Notes: generated by a model not told the origin, from the letters alone. A DNA stretch of 64,000 bases from Diplonema japonicum (GCA_964019335.1 OZ025679.1:1-64000); one strand, 5' to 3'. Numbered from the stretch's first letter, positions 37,595-49,626 are shown. Made by a program: numbers and translations.

Positions 37595-37665
37595 CATAAT
37601 TATCCACTTACCTTAAGCATTATTTCGTGTTTTTTTATTTACAGCCGCTGCACACCTCACAGCAC

Positions 37666-38616
37666 ATGCCGTGGGAGTCCGTCACTACCATCAAGCGATG
37701 CAAGGAAGCGTCCTACAGCGTGATGTGGGGAGACGATGCAAGGGTGCTGTACAGTGCAGGCATCGACGGGCGTGTGGTAGGCTTCGACATGAAAGGGAAG
37801 CAGGTAGTGGAGTGCAACTTGAACAAAGGACAGGATGTAGTGCCCATAACAAAGATTAAGCTTTACGGAAAGCAGCGAGCCTTGGCCGCAAGGAGCGATG
37901 GGAGCATCATAAAGGTAGACCTGCGCGAGAACAGGCCCACACAGAGTATCCAGGAAGACAACGAAGTGTACACAATGGACGTCACACGAGATAGGACACA
38001 CTTCTTCACAGCAGGGAAGGACGGCAAGATCAGGCACTACGACATGACACGTGAGACGCCGCTGCATGTGCTGAACGATGAGGTGAACTACGATGTAGGG
38101 GTGCACCCTGTGCGGGTGTACTGCTTGAAGTGCGCACCGAAGAACGACCAAATAGTGTTCACGGGCGGGTGGGAATCGGTGAAGGCTTGGGATCTGCGAT
38201 CTAAGGGCAAGCCTGTGAAGGAGATAATTGGGCCCTACTTAGTGGGTGAGTCCATGGCTTTCACAGCGAACGACGCTCTGATCACAGCATCGCACCGCCC
38301 CGCCGAGCAGCTAGAGCAGTGGGACCTTGGGACATGCAAGAGGATCATGGTCCTGAGCGAAGACCCGTACCCCTTCCTTCCCACCTTCTTAAGTGTCACG
38401 CAGTCGCCGTACAAGTACATCGCAATAGGCGGCGGTGGCACGATCCCTTCGCACCACGCAGCTCTTATCCTCAACCACAACGCCAGCACGATACTCGCGT
38501 CCCTCCCTAAGCAGGATAACCCGAGGTCACTCCATTGCTGCGACTTCAACCACAAGAACAACACAGTGGCCTTTGGCGATGCTGGAGGAAGACTCCATGT
38601 AATGAGCACAGCTTAG
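37666..38616 (+). CDS. WD40-repeat protein
   Basis: SAGIDGRV..FD, TAGKDGKIRHYD and TGGWESVKAWD repeats. Confidence 0.88.
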   Translation: MPWESVTTIKRCKEASYSVMWGDDARVLYSAGIDGRVVGFDMKGKQVVECNLNKGQDVVPITKIKLYGKQRALAARSDGSIIKVDLRENRPTQSIQEDNEVYTMDVTRDRTHFFTAGKDGKIRHYDMTRETPLHVLNDEVNYDVGVHPVRVYCLKCAPKNDQIVFTGGWESVKAWDLRSKGKPVKEIIGPYLVGESMAFTANDALITASHRPAEQLEQWDLGTCKRIMVLSEDPYPFLPTFLSVTQSPYKYIAIGGGGTIPSHHAALILNHNASTILASLPKQDNPRSLHCCDFNHKNNTVAFGDAGGRLHVMSTA

Positions 38617-38701
38617 TTTGTACAGTAACACCACAACTTCTGTTGTGCAGATGCCTTGCTACCCTTGGGTCGCTTTACCCCTGCAGACTGGCCAATATGC
38701 A

Positions 38702-39253
38702 ATGTGCGACACGCTTAATATAGTGCTGCTGGGAGATGAGGGGGTGGGGAAGACGTCCCTGCTCAGGGAGTATGCAGACGAATTTACGGAGACAATAGGC
38801 TTTAATGCAGTGGCTGTGAACGAGGTGGTGGCAGGGAAGGACATGAAGGTGATGCTGTATGATTTGGGGGACGACGATGTGATGCGCAGCCTGGTGATGG
38901 AGAGGGGACACTGCTTTGTGGTGTGCTTTGCGGTGGATGATGAAGAGAGTTTTAGGAAGGTGATTGAAAAATGGCTGCCTGCGGTGCAGCACATCGACAC
39001 AGGCCCGCCAGTCATCTTATGCTGTACAAAGGTTGATCTCTGTCAATCTCCGGCAACTCATCCCGCAGTCCTCAAGGCAACTACCCATGCCAAGGACCTA
39101 CAGTATTCTTTCCTCACTACCACAACTCATTCACGCCCCTCCATTGCTACCCTATTCGCCCTCTCCGCAACCCAAGCACACCTCCACGCCTCCGAGACTA
39201 TCCTCCTTGAGACGTCCCGCAACGGCCCACGGAAGTGCTGTGCCATATCGTGA
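38702..39253 (+). CDS. Atypical Rho/Ras-like small GTPase with C-terminal CaaX
   Basis: GDEGVGKT P-loop, LYDLG, TKVD, C-terminal CCAIS*. Confidence 0.85.
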   Translation: MCDTLNIVLLGDEGVGKTSLLREYADEFTETIGFNAVAVNEVVAGKDMKVMLYDLGDDDVMRSLVMERGHCFVVCFAVDDEESFRKVIEKWLPAVQHIDTGPPVILCCTKVDLCQSPATHPAVLKATTHAKDLQYSFLTTTTHSRPSIATLFALSATQAHLHASETILLETSRNGPRKCCAIS

Positions 39254-39405
39254 ATTGTATAAAAAAAAAAAAGAAAAAAATAGTTAAAAGTCTCGGTCAG
39301 GTTATTTTTGCCCATGCCTGCACTGAGCAAATCAGCTAGCCTCATACATTATGCATTTCCTTGTCTACTTTCATAATAATAATTTTATTATCGCAGAACA
39401 CCACT

Positions 39406-42400
39406 ATGGTAGAACACCGGAAGAGCGGGCTTGCCGCGTCAGCGGGCGATGTGAGACAGCAATGCATCTGGTCGCAGGCACAAATGGGGCTGGTGTACCC
39501 GTCCCCATATGCTATCTTTGCTGGGTACTTCAGGGCAGAGGGGAAGACAATCACGAAAGAAAAGGTAAGCTCCGTGATGAAGGCCATCCTGAAAGCGTTC
39601 CCTGCGAAACCAAAGCAACTGACGTCGGCCACCGTGGCACTGGACTTTGGACTGTTCCAGTCGTGGGGGGGCAAAGCCCCGAAGGGGATGGATTACCTGT
39701 ACCCGGAAGAGGTCACCGATGACAGTGGGAACGTGAGAACCACTTCCGAAGTCTTCAGCCAGACCAACAAGTTCCAGGATTCGGCTTGCGACATCTGGTT
39801 CCACATCAAATCCGACCAGTCGCTAGAGAAATGTAGGGAGGTGCAAGCCATCATCGAGTTGACTCTGGGTGGCGTGGTCAAGAAGACAAAGAACGTACAA
39901 GAAGCTGCCTCCAAGACGCCTTCCGGTGGGAAGGGTAAAGTACTTGGATGTCGATTCGCAGAAAACCTGAACAACCCTTCTGACCCCGTCACACTCGCGA
40001 CACGCACCCTTGTGGGCCACGAAGACACGGACCACTACGGGGGCTCCTTCGTGGTGGCACAGCGTTTCACAATCAACTGGAACCACATCCACAACATGAA
40101 TGACGAGGAGATCGAAGACATCATCGGACGCACTGTGGGCCCGAACTACATCCTCCCGTCCAACGACACCAGAGCACACATCAAGTGCGCCCGTGGGAGG
40201 GACGCTCAGGGTAACACTACACCAGTTCTGCGTCTAGGTTTGCCCTTCGGCAGAAGGTTCAGCCCCACGGATCTTCGCAACGACCCAGACCTCGCCTTGA
40301 AGGGGGCCAACCTTGCTGACGAGGAAGGTATGAAATGCAACGCGAACAATCATAAAAACAGGAATCTACTTTGCGGGATACACGCAAGGAGTGCAGAACC
40401 TTGAAGTCATCATGAAGCAGATGATCGGCGAGAAAGAGGGCTTCATGCGCGACAGGCTTTTCGACAACTTGCAGTCTGATTTCGGCGGCTACTTCTACGT
40501 ACCATCGTACAAAGACCTTGGGATGGATTCCTTGAGCTTTGCCCATACTGAAAAGGTCAAGAACTGGGATGAGCACCCTGGGATGGACTGGAAGAGATTG
40601 AACACCCACTACGACAAAGCATCGAAGAATGGGTGGATGCACTACAACCACTTCGAGTACTTGAACACCATGTCCACTATGTCAGAGGTGGAGGCCAAGA
40701 AAAAGGACCCCCCTTCATCCAGGGTTCTTGAGCTGCTGAGCCACAACTTCAGTATCTGGCAGGATAACTGGTACTTCAACAGGAAGCAGCCCGAGTTTAA
40801 ACACATGAGGGTCTACATCACAGAGGCCTTCGGAGCGGCGGAGGCTACGAAAGTCATGAGACTGTCCGTGATCGAACGCAAGGCATGGGCCATCAGGATG
40901 ACCTTGAGGGTCTGTGCTTCGCATGAGTACGGCCACAGAGGGACTACCTGGATCGAGGGTGGTGTAGAGAAATCAACAAACCCACCAACTGAGGGCGCGA
41001 ACACTTACACGCTGCACCCCAGTGAGGTCATTGTGGGACAGCTCCCGAACCTGTCGCTTGGTCAGGGCAGGTACGCCATGGTCTTCGAAAGAGAAAATGA
41101 ACACCTCACAAACTACATGAGCGGCTGCAACGAAGCAAGTGGCTTAGGGCATGTTGTTCCAGGGCACCAGAAGCTCCTTGACATGGGTATCGGAGGTCTC
41201 AAGAAGCAGGCGGAAGACAAGATCAAAGACAGCATCAACGTTAGCGACGAAACGACGCAGTTCCTCAACAGCGTCATCATCTCCTTAGATGCCCTCTCAG
41301 AGTACTGCGAGGCCTTCGCTCTCCTTGCAGAGGAAGTCGAGAAGTCGCTTAGTGACGGCCAGATTGCTGAGAAGGAGAATCTCTCCGACATCAGTTCCAG
41401 GCTCCGCAACATCGCAACTGAGAAGCCGTCGAGCTTTTTAGAGGCACTGCAGCTGCTCTTCATCATGCACTGCGCTCTCCACCTAAATGGCGAGCCTGTT
41501 GCTATCGGGCGTCTGGATCAGATGCTGTACCCGTTCTACAAAAAGGACTTTGATCAGGGTTTCATCGACGAGCCCACCGCTCAGGAGGCTCTGGACTGCT
41601 TCTGGATCAAACTTGATGAGAAGGTGCAGCAGAATAGGCTGAACGTTGAGGACCACCAGAAGATGGGTTACCTCATGCCTGGCCCCCCTGGAGGCACCTA
41701 CCCCAAAGCATCTGTGAACCAATGGGTGCAGCAAATCACTGTCGGCGGTTACGTCGCGGACGATGCAGACGTCCCAACGCCTAGTTACAACACGATCACA
41801 AAGCTGGCCATTAGGTGCTCTAGACGGTTGCCTTTGAACGCGCCATGCTTGTCTCTGAGAGTGAACTCGAACACGCCCGACTACATCCTCGAGGAGGCAG
41901 CAAAGGCCGTCCTCAGCGGCGGGGCACACCCCTTCTTCATTCACGACGACAAGATCATCAAAGGCCTGCTTGAGACAGGCAAGGACATCGGGCCCAGCGA
42001 ACAACGCCTCAATGCGTTGTATGACGGCAAAGTGCGCCTGCAGGACGCCAGGGACTATGCTTGCGACGGCTGCTACGAACCTTTATTCAGTGGGAAGAAC
42101 TACTTCACGTTGCCCACGATGCAGCTGCTGGAGGTATTCGAGGCTGTTCTGAACGGGAGCAAAAAGTACAGCCAGGCAGGACCTAACTTCCTGAGGGGTG
42201 GCATAGTTACAGAGCCTGTCCCCGAGGCTTCAAACCTCGAAACTTTCGAGTCGCTAAAGCAAAGCTTCTTCGAACAGATGAAACTCGTGAACATGAGGAT
42301 GACTGATAACATACTTAATGGCTTCGGGGCCAGGGAATCCGGTTGTCCCACACCCTTGCTCTCCGCGATCATGGACGACTGCATTGGCAAGGGCAGGGAC

Positions 42401-43630
42401 CTCTACAACGGGGGTGGGCAGTACAACTTGGTGTCTCTGTGCATCACGGGGATCCCCACGTGGATCAACGCCATGTACAGCATCAAGAAGATGGTCTACG
42501 ACCAGGAGTCTGCTGTGACGTCACTCCCCGAGCTTGTCGAATGCCTCATCTGCGACTGGGGGCACAACATGGTGGAGCCCTTCCATAGCGCTTTACTGGG
42601 CAAGGGCAGGACTGAGGCCAGAGCTGAGAGATGGAAGAGGCTCCGTGAAATCGCGGACGCCCTCCCTAAGTTCGGCCGTGGGAACCCTGAGGTGGACAAG
42701 CTGGCACAGGAACTCATCGGCAAGCTTTGCGATATTGTGCTGAACTCATACCGTAAGCCCGCTCTGGCCTCTACCAAGGACAGCATCAACCGTTTAACGG
42801 AAAAGTTCGGCACCGAGGAGAACCCCTTCGGCGGCTTCCAGGTGCAAGTGGGGTGTGCCACCTTTGAGAACTACGTGGGCTTCGGGATCGGAGCAGGTGC
42901 CAGTGCAGAGGGCAGGCGCAACAATCAAACACTTTCATCCGACCTGTCGCCGTCGCCAAGTCTTGTGGACAAGCCTGTGGACCATCAAGCTTGTTCTTTC
43001 GTAGACGCCCTGCAGGGGTACACATCGACCGACATCGACAAGTTGACGCAGGGCGCTATGACAGACTTCAACATCGAGGAGAGCTTCCCTCTGGAGGACC
43101 TTGTTCAGGTGCTGCGCAAGTTCTCGGAGGGTTTAGGCCCCAACATGATGACCATCACAACTGCAGACCCTGCCACCTTCGAGGACGCATGCACGGACCC
43201 TGAAGGGTACGACCTGCTGCGCGTCCGCATGGGTGGCTGGACTGAGTTCTTTACGTCACTAAACCCGGACAACCAAGAGCAGCATAGGAGGCGACCCCTC
43301 TCGACGCCAAGCGGTGCTTCGACCAGCCACCTGAAGGCCAAGAGGAAGACCAACGCTGCCATGGTGGAGCACGTCGTGGAAAGCAGTGTTGTGCTGCAGG
43401 CGGCAGTCGAACCTGAGGACAAGGTGCTGAAGGCGCTGGAGAGGACAACGGAAGCATTGATGTTGTCTGCGAAGACTGCTGATACCTTGAACGCAAAGAT
43501 CACAGAACTGGAGGAAACCGCAAAGGAGGACAAGAAAAAGACTAAGAAGAAGAAGAAGAAGACCCTTAGTAGCAGCACCAAAAAGACCGGAGCCGAACCA
43601 AAGAAACCCCTTGGTAGCAGCAGGAAGTAG
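39406..43630 (+). CDS. DyP-type heme peroxidase - glycyl radical enzyme (PFL2-like) fusion, ~1396 aa
   Basis: The 34-nt GT-AG intron 40328-40361 fuses both ORFs in frame (DEE-G-IYFAGY). DyP motifs: DIWFHIKS, LGCRFAENLNNP, GGSFVVAQRF, EDIIGRT, AHIK, LRLGLPFG, DRLF..GGYFYVPS. GRE motifs: GHVVPG, IGRLDQMLYPFY, QITVGG, DGCYEP, KFG, GASAEGR, RVRMGGWTEFF. Confidence 0.93.
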
Positions 43631-44411
43631 CTTTCTCATCCTACTCCCATTCCTCCATCCCCTCATTCTCCCCACGATCGATTACAAACTGGTGGTGGTT
43701 GCCTTAGCAACAGCGCAGCAGTTGACGTCGCCTCTTGGCGGATGCGTGCATCGCCCTGCAGCGCAACCTTTCCTCGCCACTCACCAGTTTTTTCTTCTTT
43801 TTTTTTTCTTTTTTTTTTTTTTTTTTTTGCCAACGTTCATTAATAAAGAATGCATTGCCCAACAATACTGGGCAATGGAGAAGAAAGTTGTTATGCTGCA
43901 ATGTGACCTTTGAAACGGTGCAGTGGGAGAACGTGCATTTTAGCAGTTCTCCCCCTCCCCTTTTTCTTTTTCTCCACCCCCCCCCCCCCCCCCTGTTGTT
44001 CACCAGTCCACTCCCTACTTTGTCCTCCGTGCATACAATGCAAAAGAAGAACAATAAATACAACTGCTCTTTCCCAAAGTTCAGAAAGCCTTTTGGTACC
44101 TGGTTGGATATCTCACAACCACCCGTTAGCTTTATGACTTACAACAACCCTGTGCTCCTAACGTTTTATTTTCTTTTCCATTTTTTTTTTAAAAAAATAT
44201 TTGAAGGGTTTAACTAAAAAAAAAGAGGGTTTCTTGATCTGTGAGACCAACAACAAGACGGTCACGTTAAAAAGATATTATTCTTCATACTTCTTTTTTT
44301 GTTCCCTCTGCCCCCCCCCCCCCCCCCCCTTCAAACTCTCCATTCTTTTCACCCCCCTTTTTTTTTACTCATTACAAAAAAACCCGTACCACAGGAAGGA
44401 AGGTTGGGACA

Positions 44412-44470
44412 ATGGGTAGTGTGCCGCACGATCAGCTGCCGAATGTGTTGGCAGACCATGGGTATGGCAA

Positions 44471-44512
<42 letters not shown>

Positions 44513-47500
44513 TTTAAGTGAAGATAAGATAGCATTATTTCACGCGTGGTGGCAGGGGGTTTAACGAGTAGGGATCTTAATATCCCGTTTACTTCACTCG
44601 CTGCGCTCGTGAAGTAAAAAGCTACGAGTTAAACTTGCCACCACAAGTGGAATAATGCTCTTATTTTCACTAATACGTTGTTTTATTAACAAGAGCCGGG
44701 TTTGAAAGGGTGGGAGGTTACAGGGTTACAACAGGTGAAAGTGAGATTTGGGTTACAAAGTGTCGTTGCTAAATTTCAGTTTGTGCGACTCTTTTGTCCT
44801 CATCCCGCTTGCAAACATGCAAGCTGCATATGCTTGACACACTATGTTGTAGGGGTCGCTGAATTTCATTGCCAGATACTCTTTCATTTGTTCCTGACTA
44901 AACACCGAAGCTTTTTTCACCTCATGGCCTTCTTCAAAGCGCTTCAAAAGAAGTGCAACCCTGGGAAAGTTCTGCATTTTTTACCGAAGTTTCGTTGGAT
45001 GATGGCGTTGATCTTGCTGTAACTTGCCCAAATTGTCCTTCATATCTTGGAAATACTATACTAACTCGTCTTCCGTCGGGCTTTTCGATCTTGTTGTTCT
45101 GAAGTTGTGAAAAGAGCAAAAGCGGTGCCACTCTGCTTCGTAAGTGCTGGCGTTCATGATCTTCGACGCCCGCCTTTGTATCCTTCGCCTTTTTGCCCAT
45201 TGCCTTGGGCTTCCTTCTTATTGTAAAAATAGGTGAAATAGGTGAAATTAGGCCCAGGAGTGAAATAATGTTACATTATTTCACGCTCGAACATTATTTC
45301 ACTCCTGGGCCTAATTTCAAGGTAAACTGGGAGTGAAAATAAAGCTGGGAGTGACATAATTTAAAATCTTATTTTCACTCCCACCCTTGAAAACCCGGCT
45401 CGAGTTATTATATAAAAAAAAAAAAAAAGCTCTACCGGTGTGTGGCTGATGATCCAGCAGGTTCTCTTCAACACCCACGAGAGAGCAAGCTACCCGGAAA
45501 ACTGGGAGCTCCTGACATCCATAGTGTTCTTCGCAATGTGGGTCGTGTTAAGAAAAGCTGCATTTAAGACCTGTTTGCTGAGAATGGCCAGGTCCATGGG
45601 TGCTCCTGTATGCCTCAAGAAACACTAACATCAACCCAACTCAGGACGAAGGTGAGGAATACAAGTGGGCAGTTCTTGCCTGGAATGGTGTGTTCCACAC
45701 ATGGTCGACTGTGTTCCTGCTGGAGTGGCTGCCCCTCCACAGGTGGTACTGGCACACGGAGTGGGTGTGGGAGAACATCAACGACCCCAAGCCGCAAAGA
45801 ATGGAACTCGAGATGAAGTGCTTTTACATGCTCCAGCTAGGGTACCACTTCCAGAGCTTGTTCTGGCATTTCACAGAAGAGAGGCGTACGGACTTCATGA
45901 CAATGATGATCCATCATGTTGTGACTGTATGTGGGAAAATATAAAAAATGCACAAAAAAAAAAAAAATTAGGTGATCTTGATATTGGGCAGTTACATGAA
46001 CTCCTTCTGCCGCATTGGGATGCTGGTGCTGCTGGTTCACGATGCCAGTGATATCCCTGTCACTCTCACGAAATGCTTCCACATGTGTCATTGGAAGAAG
46101 CTCGCACACTGTTTCTTCGTTGTTATGGTTGTTGTGTGGTTTTACTACAGGCTGTTCCTCTATCCCACTTGGGTTATCCACTCCGTTGTGTATTACCCAC
46201 CAGTATGGGGGGGGTGACGAATAATAATAACTTGTTCATAAGATAGCTACTTATTGCCAACACAAATTATGAGTCATTATTTAACTCGAGTTCCCTCGTG
46301 CAAAAAAAACGGTAACGAGAGTTAAATAATGGCTCATTTGGCGGCAAGTAAGTCGTTTTATTTCACTCTTCGTCATTTGAGTCACTCACTCTTCACTGCT
46401 TTCACTGCTGTTTTTTTTTCACGCAGGTCAGCCTTTTTGGGGATTTTCCTAAGGTAATATGGGGTTGCTATTTCGCTGTGGCATTTTAAAGGGGAAGTAA
46501 AGCACTTAATCCCACTTTTAAGAGCTGGAATGGCCTTAGATGGCCAAAAATAGTCAAAATACCCCGTCCCCAAAAAGATGTTTCAAGGGGTTGGGTACAT
46601 TTTTTTCTACGACAAGACCCATTATTTCACTCTGAAGCCCCATAATTTAACTCGAAAATCTCATAATTTAACCATCTACCAACGGACCATTTTTGCCCAC
46701 CAGGTAAATTTTCAAAACTGCAAAAAAAAACTATTCTAGCGCAACGCTGGGGCTATATGCACCCGGAAATGCCTCCAGATGTCCCAATTCTAGAGAGGGT
46801 GCCCACAGCAGGGCCCACTCCCACAACATTTCAAAAATATCGTTCCCGAAGTGCTCGAGAGGGGGTACAAAAAACAAGTCAAAAAAATCGACTGTAAAAT
46901 TCTATAAAAAGCTATTTAAGCCCTTCTTGACGCGGTTCGTACGTGCCCCAGGGCTGGGGGACTTCTTTTTTTGACCCCGAGAGGGGTTTCTGGGGGGTAT
47001 CCCCGGCAAGGTGGTAGTCTTTGAAGCCCAGAGTCACGCAAAGTTGTACCAAGCAGGCTGAACACTGAAATAGGGGTCTTTTCGACTTGCAATGCTTGCA
47101 CCGCACGTTGCGGGGAAATGGTCCCAGAAGGTACTGTCGCGTCGCATTGGGGCCTCAGGGCACTCGTTCTGTGTTTCGGGGCATGGCATTGGGGCAGCCT
47201 GCTCTGTAGTTGACTTTAGCTGTTGTTTGGGCAGCCTCCCTAGTAGCCCTTCGATGACTGCCTCTTTGAGGCGTGAATCCACTGTCGTTCATACTCAGGG
47301 TGTTGGGGGGCAATGCTTTTTTCCAAACAAGCCAGGCATTTGCCAGAGATTTATCTAACAAGTACGAAAATACTTTCAGGGGCCACTTCGAAGTCATAAG
47401 GGTGCGTTTATGGCGTTTTGTCACAGCGTCACCCAGCGTCGGTTCCGCCCATTGCGGTGTTGTAAATATGCACTTGGTGGGGAGCGGGATGTCCTTTCTG

Positions 47501-49626
47501 GAGGGCCTCCGGCTTTCATTCTCTTTTGGCCGACACGCCAAATTTGACTTCACCAGAACATCCAACGTCGACAGAAAGCGCACAGGCTTGATTGCATGCC
47601 ACGTTGTGGTGCAAAGGATGCTCGTGTGCTGGTGGAACTGGGTGTCTCCACAGGGTGCGCGTCCTTGGGCTTGCGGCCTCGCTTCTTTGGGGCATCCGTG
47701 AGTGATCTCCGGGAGGCCTTCGCGATAGGTAGAAGTCAGCACGCTTGTTTGTTTCGCTGTGGGAACACAGATTTCCCAGAATAGTCAAAAAGCGGTCTCT
47801 TGACATGACGGTGGCGTACCCAGGGGTGTGGTTGAGAGGCGTGGAGCCAGTGTGCCAGTAGTCAGAATAATCTGGCTTGATATCCAAGTCCATCGACAAA
47901 AGGGCACCTAGGAAGGTATGCAGAGCATTTGCCACATTGTTCGAAGTTATGACCCGAATAACGTTTGGGACGAGCATTTGGGAGAATATATGGAATGGCG
48001 TTGAGCCTCTGATGTCAAAACAGGGTCCACAAGGATTCCGATCTTCACGAAACCGGATGCCTTCCAACTCCTCCGGCTTTGCCGTCCAATCACCCTGCTG
48101 TGACTCGGAATCGGTCGAATTCGAATCAGAATCACTGTCCGTATCAAAATTGCATAATAGGGATGAGCCATCAGTGCTACCATCACTCATAATGTCCTCT
48201 TCCGGCCTCTTTCTGGGTGCCCTTTTTTGAAGTGATTTTTAAGGGTAAATTTAGGCTGGCGTTTTTTTTTATTTTTTCATTTTCTTACAAAGTTAGGGCA
48301 GCATTTAGTTTATATTTTTCATATTTTCCGCGCAGGACCCCGGATGCGAGAAGTGTCCGGGCTGTATTGCATTGAAAGCCCTTTGCGCAAAAGATTTTTT
48401 TTCAAATCGTCTCTATAAAGACGCTCGTTGGTAGATGGTTAACTAGTTAAATTATGGCGATTTCGCGTTAAATTATGAGGCCCCTAGTGAGTGAAGAAAA
48501 TGACGAAGAGTGAAATAAAGTAATTTTATCTGATAGTTTAGAAATTGATCACTTTCTCGGTCACTCCGCGTGACCGAGAAAGTGGGCCAAAAACTCAAAA
48601 CCAAATTATGAGCTATCAACTGTCAATAATAGCTATCAAATTATGAAAAACGGCCTATTTTCAGCTGATTCAGGCAGAAGTGCGGGGGCCCTACACATTT
48701 TTAGTCCCCCGGACAACCCTGTTGACCTGTGACATTGCACCTTTCCAGGTTGTAGTTCTCCGTTACACGAAGACCCCCGAAGAAACCGCATACAAACAGC
48801 ACGGTACAGCAAGAAGCAGTTCAGCGGCCCAGACATGAGCTCCTCGAAATCCTCCCGTTTGAAAGTAGATGCTTTCGTCTTTGGGGGCCCTTGTTCTTCA
48901 GCACGCTTGCAAAAAAGTTTGACACGGTCCCATTCCCCAACCTTCTGGTTGCACTTTTCCTTTAAAACTGCCCTTATCTGGGAGTACTTGGTTCAAAGAG
49001 AAGAAGGGGCAGCGCCGTTTTTCTTCAGCTTCCTAAGATGAGCGAGAATGTCATCTTCAGTCGGTTCTTCGTCTTCCCACGAAAGTCAGCCCATGTTTTC
49101 AAGTACTGTGTTTTGCTTATTTCGGGTAGAAGACTCTCTTCCTTCTTCGTTTTCGGCATTTGATGTTTTTATTTTTGATGATCTTGAGCTCAAATGTTTA
49201 AAAAAGAATTTCACTCTGCCCCCAATAATGTCACTTTCCCCCCTATAATTTGGCAGCCACGGGCCATCAACACCTAATACCTGCCCATAATTGAGCTATC
49301 AAATTATAGCCCCGGATTATCAAATTATGAGAGGGGGGGTAATCAGATTATAGGGGGGGTTAGGAGTGAAGAAATTCCTGAACTATCAGATAAAAAAAAA
49401 AAACGGAACAAAAAAAAAAAAACAGCCGGGCCAATATGGGATCGTGTGGATATTGTTCACCCTCCTTATGTGTGTCCTTTTTATCTTGCACGTGTGGTGG
49501 TTCCATCTCTTCATGAAAATCGCCTTCGGTATTGCCAAGAACGGATCAGGTGAGGACCTAACGGAAGAACGCGAAGCAGCCAAGGCCAAGCTCCGAAACG
49601 ACATCGAATCAGGCCGCGCCGACTAG
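44412..49626 (+). CDS. Ceramide synthase (Lag1/TLC domain), 5 exons
   Basis: Exons 44412-44461, 45430-45607, 45645-45926, 45972-46202 and 49426-49626 are in frame. Lag1 motif RRTDFMTMMIHHVVT...GMLVLLVHDASD, then WFYYRL and LHVWWF. Confidence 0.9.
44514..45410 (-). mobile_element. Decayed Crypton-like tyrosine-recombinase element in intron 1 of the ceramide synthase
   Basis: Frameshifted minus-strand peptide PTEDELV*YF..TIWASYSKINAI..FPRVALLLKRFEEGHEVKKASVFSQEQM..ASGMRTKE (44753-45200). Terminal hairpins at 44517-44671 and 45243-45319; 24-bp inverted repeat 44693-44716/45378-45401. Confidence 0.72.
46220..49390 (-). mobile_element. Second decayed Crypton-like element in intron 4 (host of the piggyBac)
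   Basis: Minus-strand relic 49159 to ~48720: MPKTKKEESLLPEISKTQYLKTWADF / PTEDDILAHL..APSSL*TKYSQIRAVL..KTKASTFKREDF / GFFGGLRVTENYNL. Shares attatttcactc/cataattt motifs with element 1; hairpin at 48550-48584. Outer boundaries approximate. Confidence 0.7.
46672..48438 (-). mobile_element. Internally deleted piggyBac transposon with TTAA target-site duplication
   Basis: TTAA|CCATCTACCAACG ... CGTTGGTAGATGG|TTAA (13-bp perfect TIR). Transposase relics FLGALLSM..DYW..VMSRDRFLTIL, WHAIKPVRFLST, YNTAMGGTD, KWPLKVFSYLLD..ANAW and Cys-rich CKHC..CSACLVQLC..FKDYH, broken by frameshifts. Confidence 0.92.

Follow-up and report, generated by a model that had tools for sequence, protein, structure and literature searches.

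The plus-strand gene at positions 39,406 to 43,630 of a 64,000-nucleotide stretch of Diplonema japonicum DNA (GCA_964019335.1 OZ025679.1:1-64000; the whole stretch is called the window here) almost certainly encodes a single polypeptide in which a class-P heme peroxidase of the DyP type is rigidly joined to a full glycyl radical enzyme (GRE) fold, making it a euglenozoan member of DyP subclass P2. The architecture itself is already known, annotated but uncharacterised, and what is new is a euglenozoan, intron-bearing member. To our knowledge, characterised GREs are all activated by a partner activase of the radical-SAM (S-adenosylmethionine) type, and are confined to anoxic life since O2 destroys the radical. 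The fusion family has kept all of the residues of radical chemistry and always has the peroxidase attached, many of its carriers belong to aerobic groups, and most of the carrier genomes checked are without an activase. Genome searches give good support to the view that the family is independent of a PflA-type activase and of any conserved neighbouring gene, and it is possible, if somewhat short of probable, that the heme domain acts as a radical initiator in a peroxide-driven self-activation.

The D. japonicum gene consists of two plus-strand open reading frames (ORFs), 39361-40404 and 40391-43630, that lie in different frames and overlap by 14 nucleotides (nt). Excision of 34 nt with GT at 40328-29 and AG at 40360-61 fuses ...ADEE, G and IYFAGYTQG..., and the spliced product of exon 1 and exon 2 is one DyP-GRE protein of 1396 amino acids (aa). 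Contigs of four sequencing runs (X1 to X4) were compared with window positions 39300-43700; X1 to X3, for which an RNA origin is only a guess, derive from close relatives with 90-99% identity to the window, while X4 is DNA-like and comes from the window's own organism. An X2 contig joins 40325 to 40360 ('cut +2', corresponding to 40328-40361), leaving out 34 nt with GT..AG ends between flanks of 81 and 190 nt, and a 5.4-kb X4 DNA contig has the 34 nt present with zero differences from the window. The splice is independently supported by the DyP profile, of which no more than seven positions are missing where it crosses the junction. The 34-nt intron by which the first-pass annotation had joined the two ORFs into a protein of ~1396 aa is thus borne out by the GT and AG sites, by profile continuity, and by the X2 contig, a related-strain sequence, guessed to be RNA, that lacks exactly those 34 nt across 40327/40362.

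The 5' end of the transcript could be placed as well. An X1 contig has its 5' end at 39396, preceded by 17 extra letters, AGTTTCTGTACTTTATT. Followed by GGT, this string occurs in 160 genomic copies versus 0 in a reversed control, and the copies are dispersed over many contigs, often near contig ends; one of them (L082:1485-1520) reads ...ACCAACGATTCTAAAGCTACAGTTTCTGTACTTTATTG and continues with GT. The genomic repeats bearing AGTTTCTGTACTTTATT are spliced-leader (SL) RNA genes of the kinetoplastid/diplonemid type, with a 5' half (ACCAACGATTCTAAAGCTAC...) that we take to be diplonemid-like. Because the SL junction lies at 39395-96 and leaves a 5' untranslated region (UTR) of ~9 nt, the ATG at 39406 is the start codon. 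The contigs of the RNA runs each cover part of the gene and none is full-length. The gene is expressed, SL-trans-spliced and cis-spliced, and the same gene holds both SL trans-splicing and a very short (34-nt) canonical GT..AG cis-intron.

The N-terminal half is a DyP-type peroxidase of class P (B-type), subclass P2, for which heme binding and peroxide turnover are predicted. Profile searches were run exon by exon, with exon 1 taken as 39406-40326 and exon 2 as 40364-43627. Exon 1 matched positions 85-265 of TIGR01413 (79.8 bits, 2.2e-22) and also Pfam Dyp_perox_C (34 bits with a cut-off of 20, 3e-08), and the start of exon 2 continued the match to TIGR01413 at positions 273-322 (22.6 bits, 5.8e-05). 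The heme-pocket residues are listed in Table 1. In the alignment to solved DyPs, the literal GXXDG motif is absent from the window protein and F-A-E-N-L stands in its place; an Asp-to-Glu substitution in the distal pocket is recorded for subclass P2, and Glu is accepted at this position in subclasses I3 and P2 (PMC9719856). For a structural view, a Thermoanaerobaculia homologue (L061:1475-5074) was folded, minus its first 53 residues, with a 119-sequence alignment, and the resulting model of 1200 residues has a mean pLDDT of 88.9 and a pTM of 0.91. Residues 1-292 of this model match the class-B/P DyPs KpDyP, YfeX, DtpB and DypB (VIA-align, Z ~25, root-mean-square deviation 2.4-2.7 Å). A second DyP-containing gene is present in the D. 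japonicum genome on another contig (C90; L084:2512-5907, +), where an uninterrupted ORF of 1132 aa gives weak matches to DyP_N and Dyp_perox_C over residues 81-583 and scored 108.7 bits for TIGR01413 in a six-frame search; its ~500 C-terminal residues are without a Pfam match, and it may be another unusual DyP fusion.

The C-terminal half has a full GRE fold of the dehydratase/eliminase (GCxE) type. Exon 2 matched the PFL-like profile PF02901 over positions 147-628 (334.9 bits, 1.4e-99) and TIGR01774 with 246 bits (cut-off 678; 6.2e-73), in an alignment that continues through position 781 of 786. Residues ~345-1199 of the homologue model align with entire GRE chains, starting at residue 2-4 of each chain and running to its end (VIA-align), the matches being propanediol dehydratase, PflD, glycerol dehydratase, CutC and HypD, with Z of 32-33 and ~700 residues superimposed at 2.6-2.9 Å. 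These boundaries revise the domain anatomy proposed in the first-pass annotation, which had placed an aromatic linker of ~170 aa between the two domains: only about 50-57 aa is true linker, and the remainder is matched, in structural alignment, by the helices at the N-terminus of known GREs. Of the linker residues (exon 2 numbering), Trp76 and His82 are invariant and Tyr94, His96 and Tyr99 nearly so, and the N-terminal helices of the GRE contribute five further invariant aromatics, Trp132, Trp136, Tyr137, Trp175 and Tyr189, in a helical region where the Pfam profile does not align. The aromatic-rich region, searched alone against 1.84 billion representative proteins, gave 57 matches, and in all but one of the long matches (>=1000 aa) it sits 300-630 residues into the protein, preceded by a part the size of a DyP. 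The remaining one, P0124 (1021 aa), has the region from residue 89 onward and could be either truncated or genuinely unfused. The pTM of 0.91 for a three-part chain of 1200 residues suggests that the DyP and GRE domains are held in a fixed inter-domain geometry. A model of the window's exon 2 alone was of lower quality (pLDDT 72.4): its first 81 aa and the surroundings of the Gly loop are poorly modelled, and the C-terminal tail appears as a low-confidence long helix. Contigs from related strains carry in-frame AAG or AAGAAG insertions at 43543 within this Lys-rich tail, consistent with a length-variable, coding low-complexity repeat.

Both of the loops expected of a GRE are present. The sequence YACDGCYEP aligns with YGIIGCVEP of glycerol dehydratase (1r8w; propanediol dehydratase, 5i2a, was also compared), so that C570 and E572 correspond to C433 and E435. 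Cys570, Glu572 and the R, R, G, G and W of the Gly loop are invariant in 119 sequences, Cys567 is near-invariant (94%), and alignments of 21 and 119 family members show little or no variation in the motifs C-D-G-C-x-E-P and R-x-R-x-G-G-W. The catalytic motifs that had been called intact in both domains on the first reading accordingly align to those of solved DyPs and of glycerol dehydratase and are conserved through the family, and the codons then assigned to the His (40177-79), Arg (40231-33), Cys (42071-73) and Gly (43235-37) are exact. The domain searches suggested at the same time were less uniform, in that DyP and PFL-like profiles matched and the Pfam Gly_radical model stayed below significance on exon 2, not reaching E 0.01.

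Two specific identities for the barrel were rejected on the residues tested and on profile scores. A true pyruvate formate-lyase (PFL) would have a Cys-Cys pair, which is missing from C-D-G-C-Y-E, and TIGR01255 gave 20 bits against a cut-off of 994; 'PFL' is here the name of a domain and not of a function. A B12-independent diol or glycerol dehydratase was rejected because GCxE is kept but the Asp in the WHD motif of 1r8w, presumably a substrate-binding residue, aligns with Thr; dehydratase equivalog profiles gave at most 165 bits against cut-offs of at least 1000. Compared with the PFL2-type GREs as a group (B12-independent glycerol/1,2-propanediol dehydratases, CutC, HypD, and PflD/YbiW), the fusion shares the whole-chain fold, the GCxE Cys loop, an R-x-x-G-aromatic Gly loop and a GxGH motif. 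It differs in its family-specific, aromatic-rich N-terminal helices, in the extra Cys of CDGC, in the dehydratase Asp that is not conserved, in NCBIfam equivalog scores far below the cut-offs (165 versus 1000), and in the many carriers from aerobic groups. Furthermore, the PFL2-type enzymes have dedicated radical-SAM activases, the activase gene of a GRE being usually adjacent, whereas the fusion is without a cognate activase gene.

The fusion is widespread. Exon 2 as query gave 465 proteins at E <= 1e-10, and the best 120 of these all contain both PF02901 and PF20628 (120/120), at 45-53% identity; almost all are 1230-1355 aa long, and two apparently truncated proteins have 1067 and 1114 aa. 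When one genome per species was scanned, at least 173 stretches, each from a bacterial species, were seen to encode a relative. Bacterial carriers are found in the Myxococcota, Actinomycetota, Bacteroidota, Pseudomonadota (Acinetobacter, Burkholderia, Xenorhabdus, and Shewanella), cyanobacteria and Chloroflexota, and eukaryotic carriers besides D. japonicum include ferns (Ceratopteris and Pteridium) and a brittle star. Acinetobacter, Pedobacter, myxobacteria, actinomycetes and cyanobacteria are aerobic groups, as are the ferns, the brittle star and D. japonicum itself. In a tree of 92 sequences (FastTree), the window protein sits on a long branch (0.82) that pairs with a second long one, and no donor was assigned. 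Archangium violaceum and Vitiosangium sp. each have a second, shorter fusion-type paralogue (G025:C291:145706-147259 and G029:C56:142740-144299), with open frames of ~1220 aa that match the PFL-like profile at positions 145-623.

Earlier descriptions of the family are few. A 'DyP-PFL' fusion was described in Chaetomium, with its physiological function called yet unknown (Zámocký et al. 2016, PMC5041501), and a 2022 survey from the Sugano group defined the fusion as DyP subclass P2 and listed it as unexplored (PMC9719856). The first-pass annotation had noted that DyP plus PFL-like architectures are annotated without biochemistry, in agreement with both papers. The D. japonicum protein resembles other members of the subclass in its domain order, in its length of ~1300 aa, in its class-P DyP with the Asp-to-Glu change in the distal pocket, and in its 45-53% identity to bacterial, fern and echinoderm members. 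It differs in residing in a euglenozoan nuclear genome and in having a 34-nt cis-intron, SL trans-splicing, a Lys-rich tail of ~105 aa, and a long branch. In the subclass P2 literature the family counts as unexplored, and a PFL activase is assumed.

An activase census was made over 30 fusion-bearing bacterial genomes, some of them draft assemblies, by six-frame searches that scored best candidates only, and gene neighbourhoods were compared over 80 bacterial loci with ±10 kb of flank. The D. japonicum assembly (62.5 Mb, 132 contigs) has no PFL-like gene besides the fusion, and GRE-activase and PflA profiles found no PflA-type activase in it, the best PFLA match reaching 64 bits against a cut-off of 232. 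This best match, the sole PflA-like gene of the assembly, on contig C3 (L001:1111-2196, +), is an intron-less AmmeMemoRadiSam radical-SAM enzyme of 362 aa that scored 475 bits for TIGR04337. The earlier statement that no activase lies nearby holds at the locus and across the whole 62.5-Mb assembly, and the wider search through genomes with the fusion gave a similar answer: by six-frame profile search, a PflA-type gene is absent from 26 of the 30 bacterial carriers, and every PFL-like gene in those 26 is of the fusion type. TIGR02494 and TIGR02493 were above cut-off in the same four genomes. In three of these, PflA lies directly beside a canonical PFL of 770-786 aa (690-725 bits), and its presence there is accounted for by that neighbour. 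The fourth, Saccharothrix sp. Mg75, has an orphan full-length PflA (G013:C91, L088:4685-5410, -; 273 bits) beside phosphoketolase and acetate kinase genes. For Acinetobacter calcoaceticus DSM 30006, the three best sub-threshold matches are PqqE, QueE and MoaA. AmmeMemoRadiSam is above cut-off in six of the 30 genomes and absent from 24, and was rejected as a family-wide activase for that reason. A separate observation concerns Chromobacterium alticapitis (G019:C157:16587-27239), where one contig carries the fusion and, only ~6 kb downstream of it, a canonical pflB-pflA pair.

When the ORFs of the 80 loci were clustered all against all, no neighbour gene proved to be conserved, and the largest non-overlapping clusters comprised at most 11 loci. 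The recurring clusters (ABC ATPase, response regulator, aldo-keto reductase, TonB receptor, ClpB, and PurA) were rejected as partners, being generic superfamilies or cases of within-genus synteny. An aldo/keto reductase gene was found within 10 kb of the fusion in nine loci (L064:4676-5722; L039, L054, L055, L063, L065, L068, L072, and L078) of Alpha- and Gammaproteobacteria and Bacteroidota; it is the sole metabolic neighbour that recurs across phyla, probably by chance, the family being common.

One question raised by these observations is how a radical might be loaded into such a barrel. In the mechanism proposed here, the family would operate without a radical-SAM activase. Compound I would arise in the heme domain by reaction with H2O2 or an organic peroxide, and its oxidising equivalent would reach the Cys570 and Gly958 fingers over conserved Trp and Tyr residues in the linker and in the N-terminal region of the GRE; a thiyl (perhaps glycyl) radical would form there and drive an elimination-type reaction. 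The radical is possibly transient, which would account for O2 tolerance. That a GRE-type enzyme lacking a radical-SAM activase has a radical injected into its Cys and Gly fingers by a fused heme, along a conserved Trp/Tyr relay, is a tentative proposal, to be held with slightly more reserve than heme initiation as such. Initiation by the heme domain would be the most economical reading, because the radical residues are invariant, no activase is found, and the peroxidase is in every case attached, in a fixed geometry. Surface Tyr and Trp residues are oxidised by DyP Compound I, and transfer of a radical from Tyr to Cys drives class Ia ribonucleotide reductase (RNR), which has a homologous barrel. 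Also in favour of heme initiation, the Chaetomium DyP-PFL gene is the peroxidase gene with the strongest induction by H2O2 and peracetic acid (PMC5041501).

Two known systems offer functional analogies. In prostaglandin H synthase and linoleate diol synthase, a hydroperoxide and a heme site generate a protein radical that starts a second radical reaction in the same polypeptide; prostaglandin H synthase is of unrelated fold, however, and its Tyr radical is next to the heme, whereas the acceptor proposed for the fusion is a Cys/Gly pair in a separate barrel domain. Class Ia RNR similarly has a ten-stranded barrel with a catalytic Cys finger, an O2-compatible metallocofactor radical, a long Tyr/Trp path, and no radical-SAM activase. 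Unlike the fusion, its initiator is a di-metal/Tyr subunit that has no heme and is not fused, and the RNR barrel has lost the Gly domain that the fusion keeps invariant.

A number of points weigh against heme initiation. Glycyl radicals are destroyed by O2, and we know of no precedent for a glycyl radical made by a heme. The invariant Trp and Tyr residues could be mere packing residues. Very divergent activases could escape six-frame searches restricted to best candidates, and the AmmeMemoRadiSam enzyme encoded in the D. japonicum genome is a relative of PflA. No canonical PFL was detected in Saccharothrix sp. Mg75, where the fusion is the sole PFL-like gene, and this is the one carrier genome in which a classical activase could in principle serve the fusion. 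A putative PFL activase has been reported elsewhere in the Chaetomium genome (PMC5041501). Finally, the literature searched holds only descriptive papers and no characterisation of any subclass P2 member.

A serious rival, though an unlikely one, is that the GRE fold has been repurposed and no glycyl radical is ever formed, with the fingers having a structural, thiol-redox or non-radical catalytic role. For example, the CxxC-like pair C567/C570 could be a peroxide-reactive or substrate-binding site coupled to the peroxidase. The missing activase, the Gly_radical score short of E 0.01 and the aerobic life of carriers speak for such a barrel, as do the additional near-invariant Cys three residues upstream of the catalytic Cys, giving a CDGC motif that glycerol dehydratase lacks, and the Thr aligned with the diol-dehydratase Asp (WHD, 1r8w). 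Against it, R-x-G-G-W and GCxE are invariant from bacteria to eukaryotes at an overall identity of ~45-50%, the pattern expected if radical chemistry has been kept, and the known barrels that abandoned the glycyl radical (class I and II RNR) have lost the Gly domain.

Rather unlikely is the view that a radical-SAM enzyme encoded elsewhere activates the GRE classically, and that the DyP domain only removes H2O2 and so protects the radical and the activase. The activator could be AmmeMemoRadiSam in D. japonicum and an unrecognised enzyme in bacteria. A protective role, offered as an alternative in the first-pass annotation, is already in print: the DyP domain has been suggested to guard the PFL domain and its activase from H2O2 (PMC9719856). 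The putative activase reported for Chaetomium (PMC5041501), the orphan PflA of Saccharothrix sp. and the PflA-related gene of the D. japonicum genome (475 bits for TIGR04337, 64 bits for PFLA) all speak for it. It is weakened because most carriers have nothing to make a radical, with no PflA-type gene in 26 of the 30 and no AmmeMemoRadiSam in 24 of the 30, and because removal of H2O2 gives a glycyl radical no protection from O2, while many carriers come from aerobic groups. Protection is thus a poor fit wherever no activase makes a radical to protect. Furthermore, no neighbour gene is conserved, and an obligate fusion, a fixed architecture and an invariant linker exceed the needs of a scavenger. 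Highly improbable, last, is a locus that encodes a truncated DyP and a GRE as two separate proteins, or that is mis-assembled or pseudogenised: the unspliced ORFs do overlap by 14 nt in different frames, and the RNA contigs are partial and come from related strains in runs only guessed to be RNA, but an intron-less contig has the exact GT..AG borders, the DyP profile runs on over the junction where unspliced exon 1 would miss the last DyP strands, bacterial homologues are all single uninterrupted ORFs of ~1300 aa, and DNA contigs reproduce the locus with 0 differences.

Table 1. Features of the D. japonicum DyP-GRE gene, in window positions; residue numbers of the GRE half follow exon 2.
Feature	Position	Strand	Basis and remarks
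Trans-splice acceptor AG	39395..39396	+	SL added here; 5' UTR ~9 nt, 39397-39405; X1 contig
Exon 1	39406..40327	+	307 codons and 1 base; holds the start codon and the bulk of the DyP domain
Distal acid Glu186 (FAENLNNP)	39961..39963	+	At the Asp position of GXXDG; aligned to FvDGteNP of 9obr; invariant, 119/119
Proximal heme ligand His258 (RAHIK)	40177..40179	+	Aligned with His of DyPs 9obr and 2hag; invariant in 119 sequences
Distal Arg276 (VLRLGLPFG)	40231..40233	+	Aligned with Arg of 9obr and 2hag; invariant in 119 sequences
Cis-intron, GT..AG, phase 1, 34 nt	40328..40361	+	Genomic sequence; skipped in X2 contig, retained in X4 contig
Exon 2	40362..43630	+	C-terminal DyP strand, linker, GRE domain, Lys-rich tail, stop codon
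True interdomain linker, about 50-57 aa	40526..40696	+	Model residues 293-345, outside the DyP and GRE matches; pLDDT 61-73
Complete GRE fold	40697..43309	+	Family-specific N-terminal helices, then 10-stranded barrel; structural and sequence alignment
Cys loop C567-D-G-C570-Y-E572	42062..42079	+	Alignment to 1r8w
Gly loop R-V-R-M-G-G958-W	43220..43240	+	RMGGW aligns with RVAGY of 1r8w and 5i2a
C-terminal extension, ~105 aa, helical, Lys-rich	43310..43627	+	Lineage-specific; rest of the family ends at RRRPxSxP

Immediately upstream of the gene, a WD40-like ORF and a small-GTPase-like ORF (LLGDEGVGKTSLL) lie on the same strand at 37627-39253, tightly packed as in polycistronic euglenozoan units. 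Downstream, 43700-47100 is a region of ~3.4 kb without long ORFs and with many T/A homopolymer runs, and it is followed by a minus-strand ORF at 47516-48190 that we take to be transposase-like.

New in this analysis are the census of activases, the revised domain anatomy and the evidence on transcripts, and they turn an old puzzle into a hypothesis open to direct test through the homologue of Acinetobacter calcoaceticus, an aerobe that can be cultivated. A negative outcome, too, would explain a conserved, peroxide-induced gene that has been called 'elusive' since 2014-2016 at the latest. Should the heme domain indeed be the initiator, the fusion would represent a third way to load the RNR/GRE barrel with a radical, the other two being radical-SAM activases and, in class I RNR, the di-metal/Tyr subunits. 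It would open GRE-type cleavage of C-O, C-N and C-C bonds to aerobic biocatalysis, and would mean that GRE-style radical catalysis takes place in air-breathing bacteria and eukaryotes.

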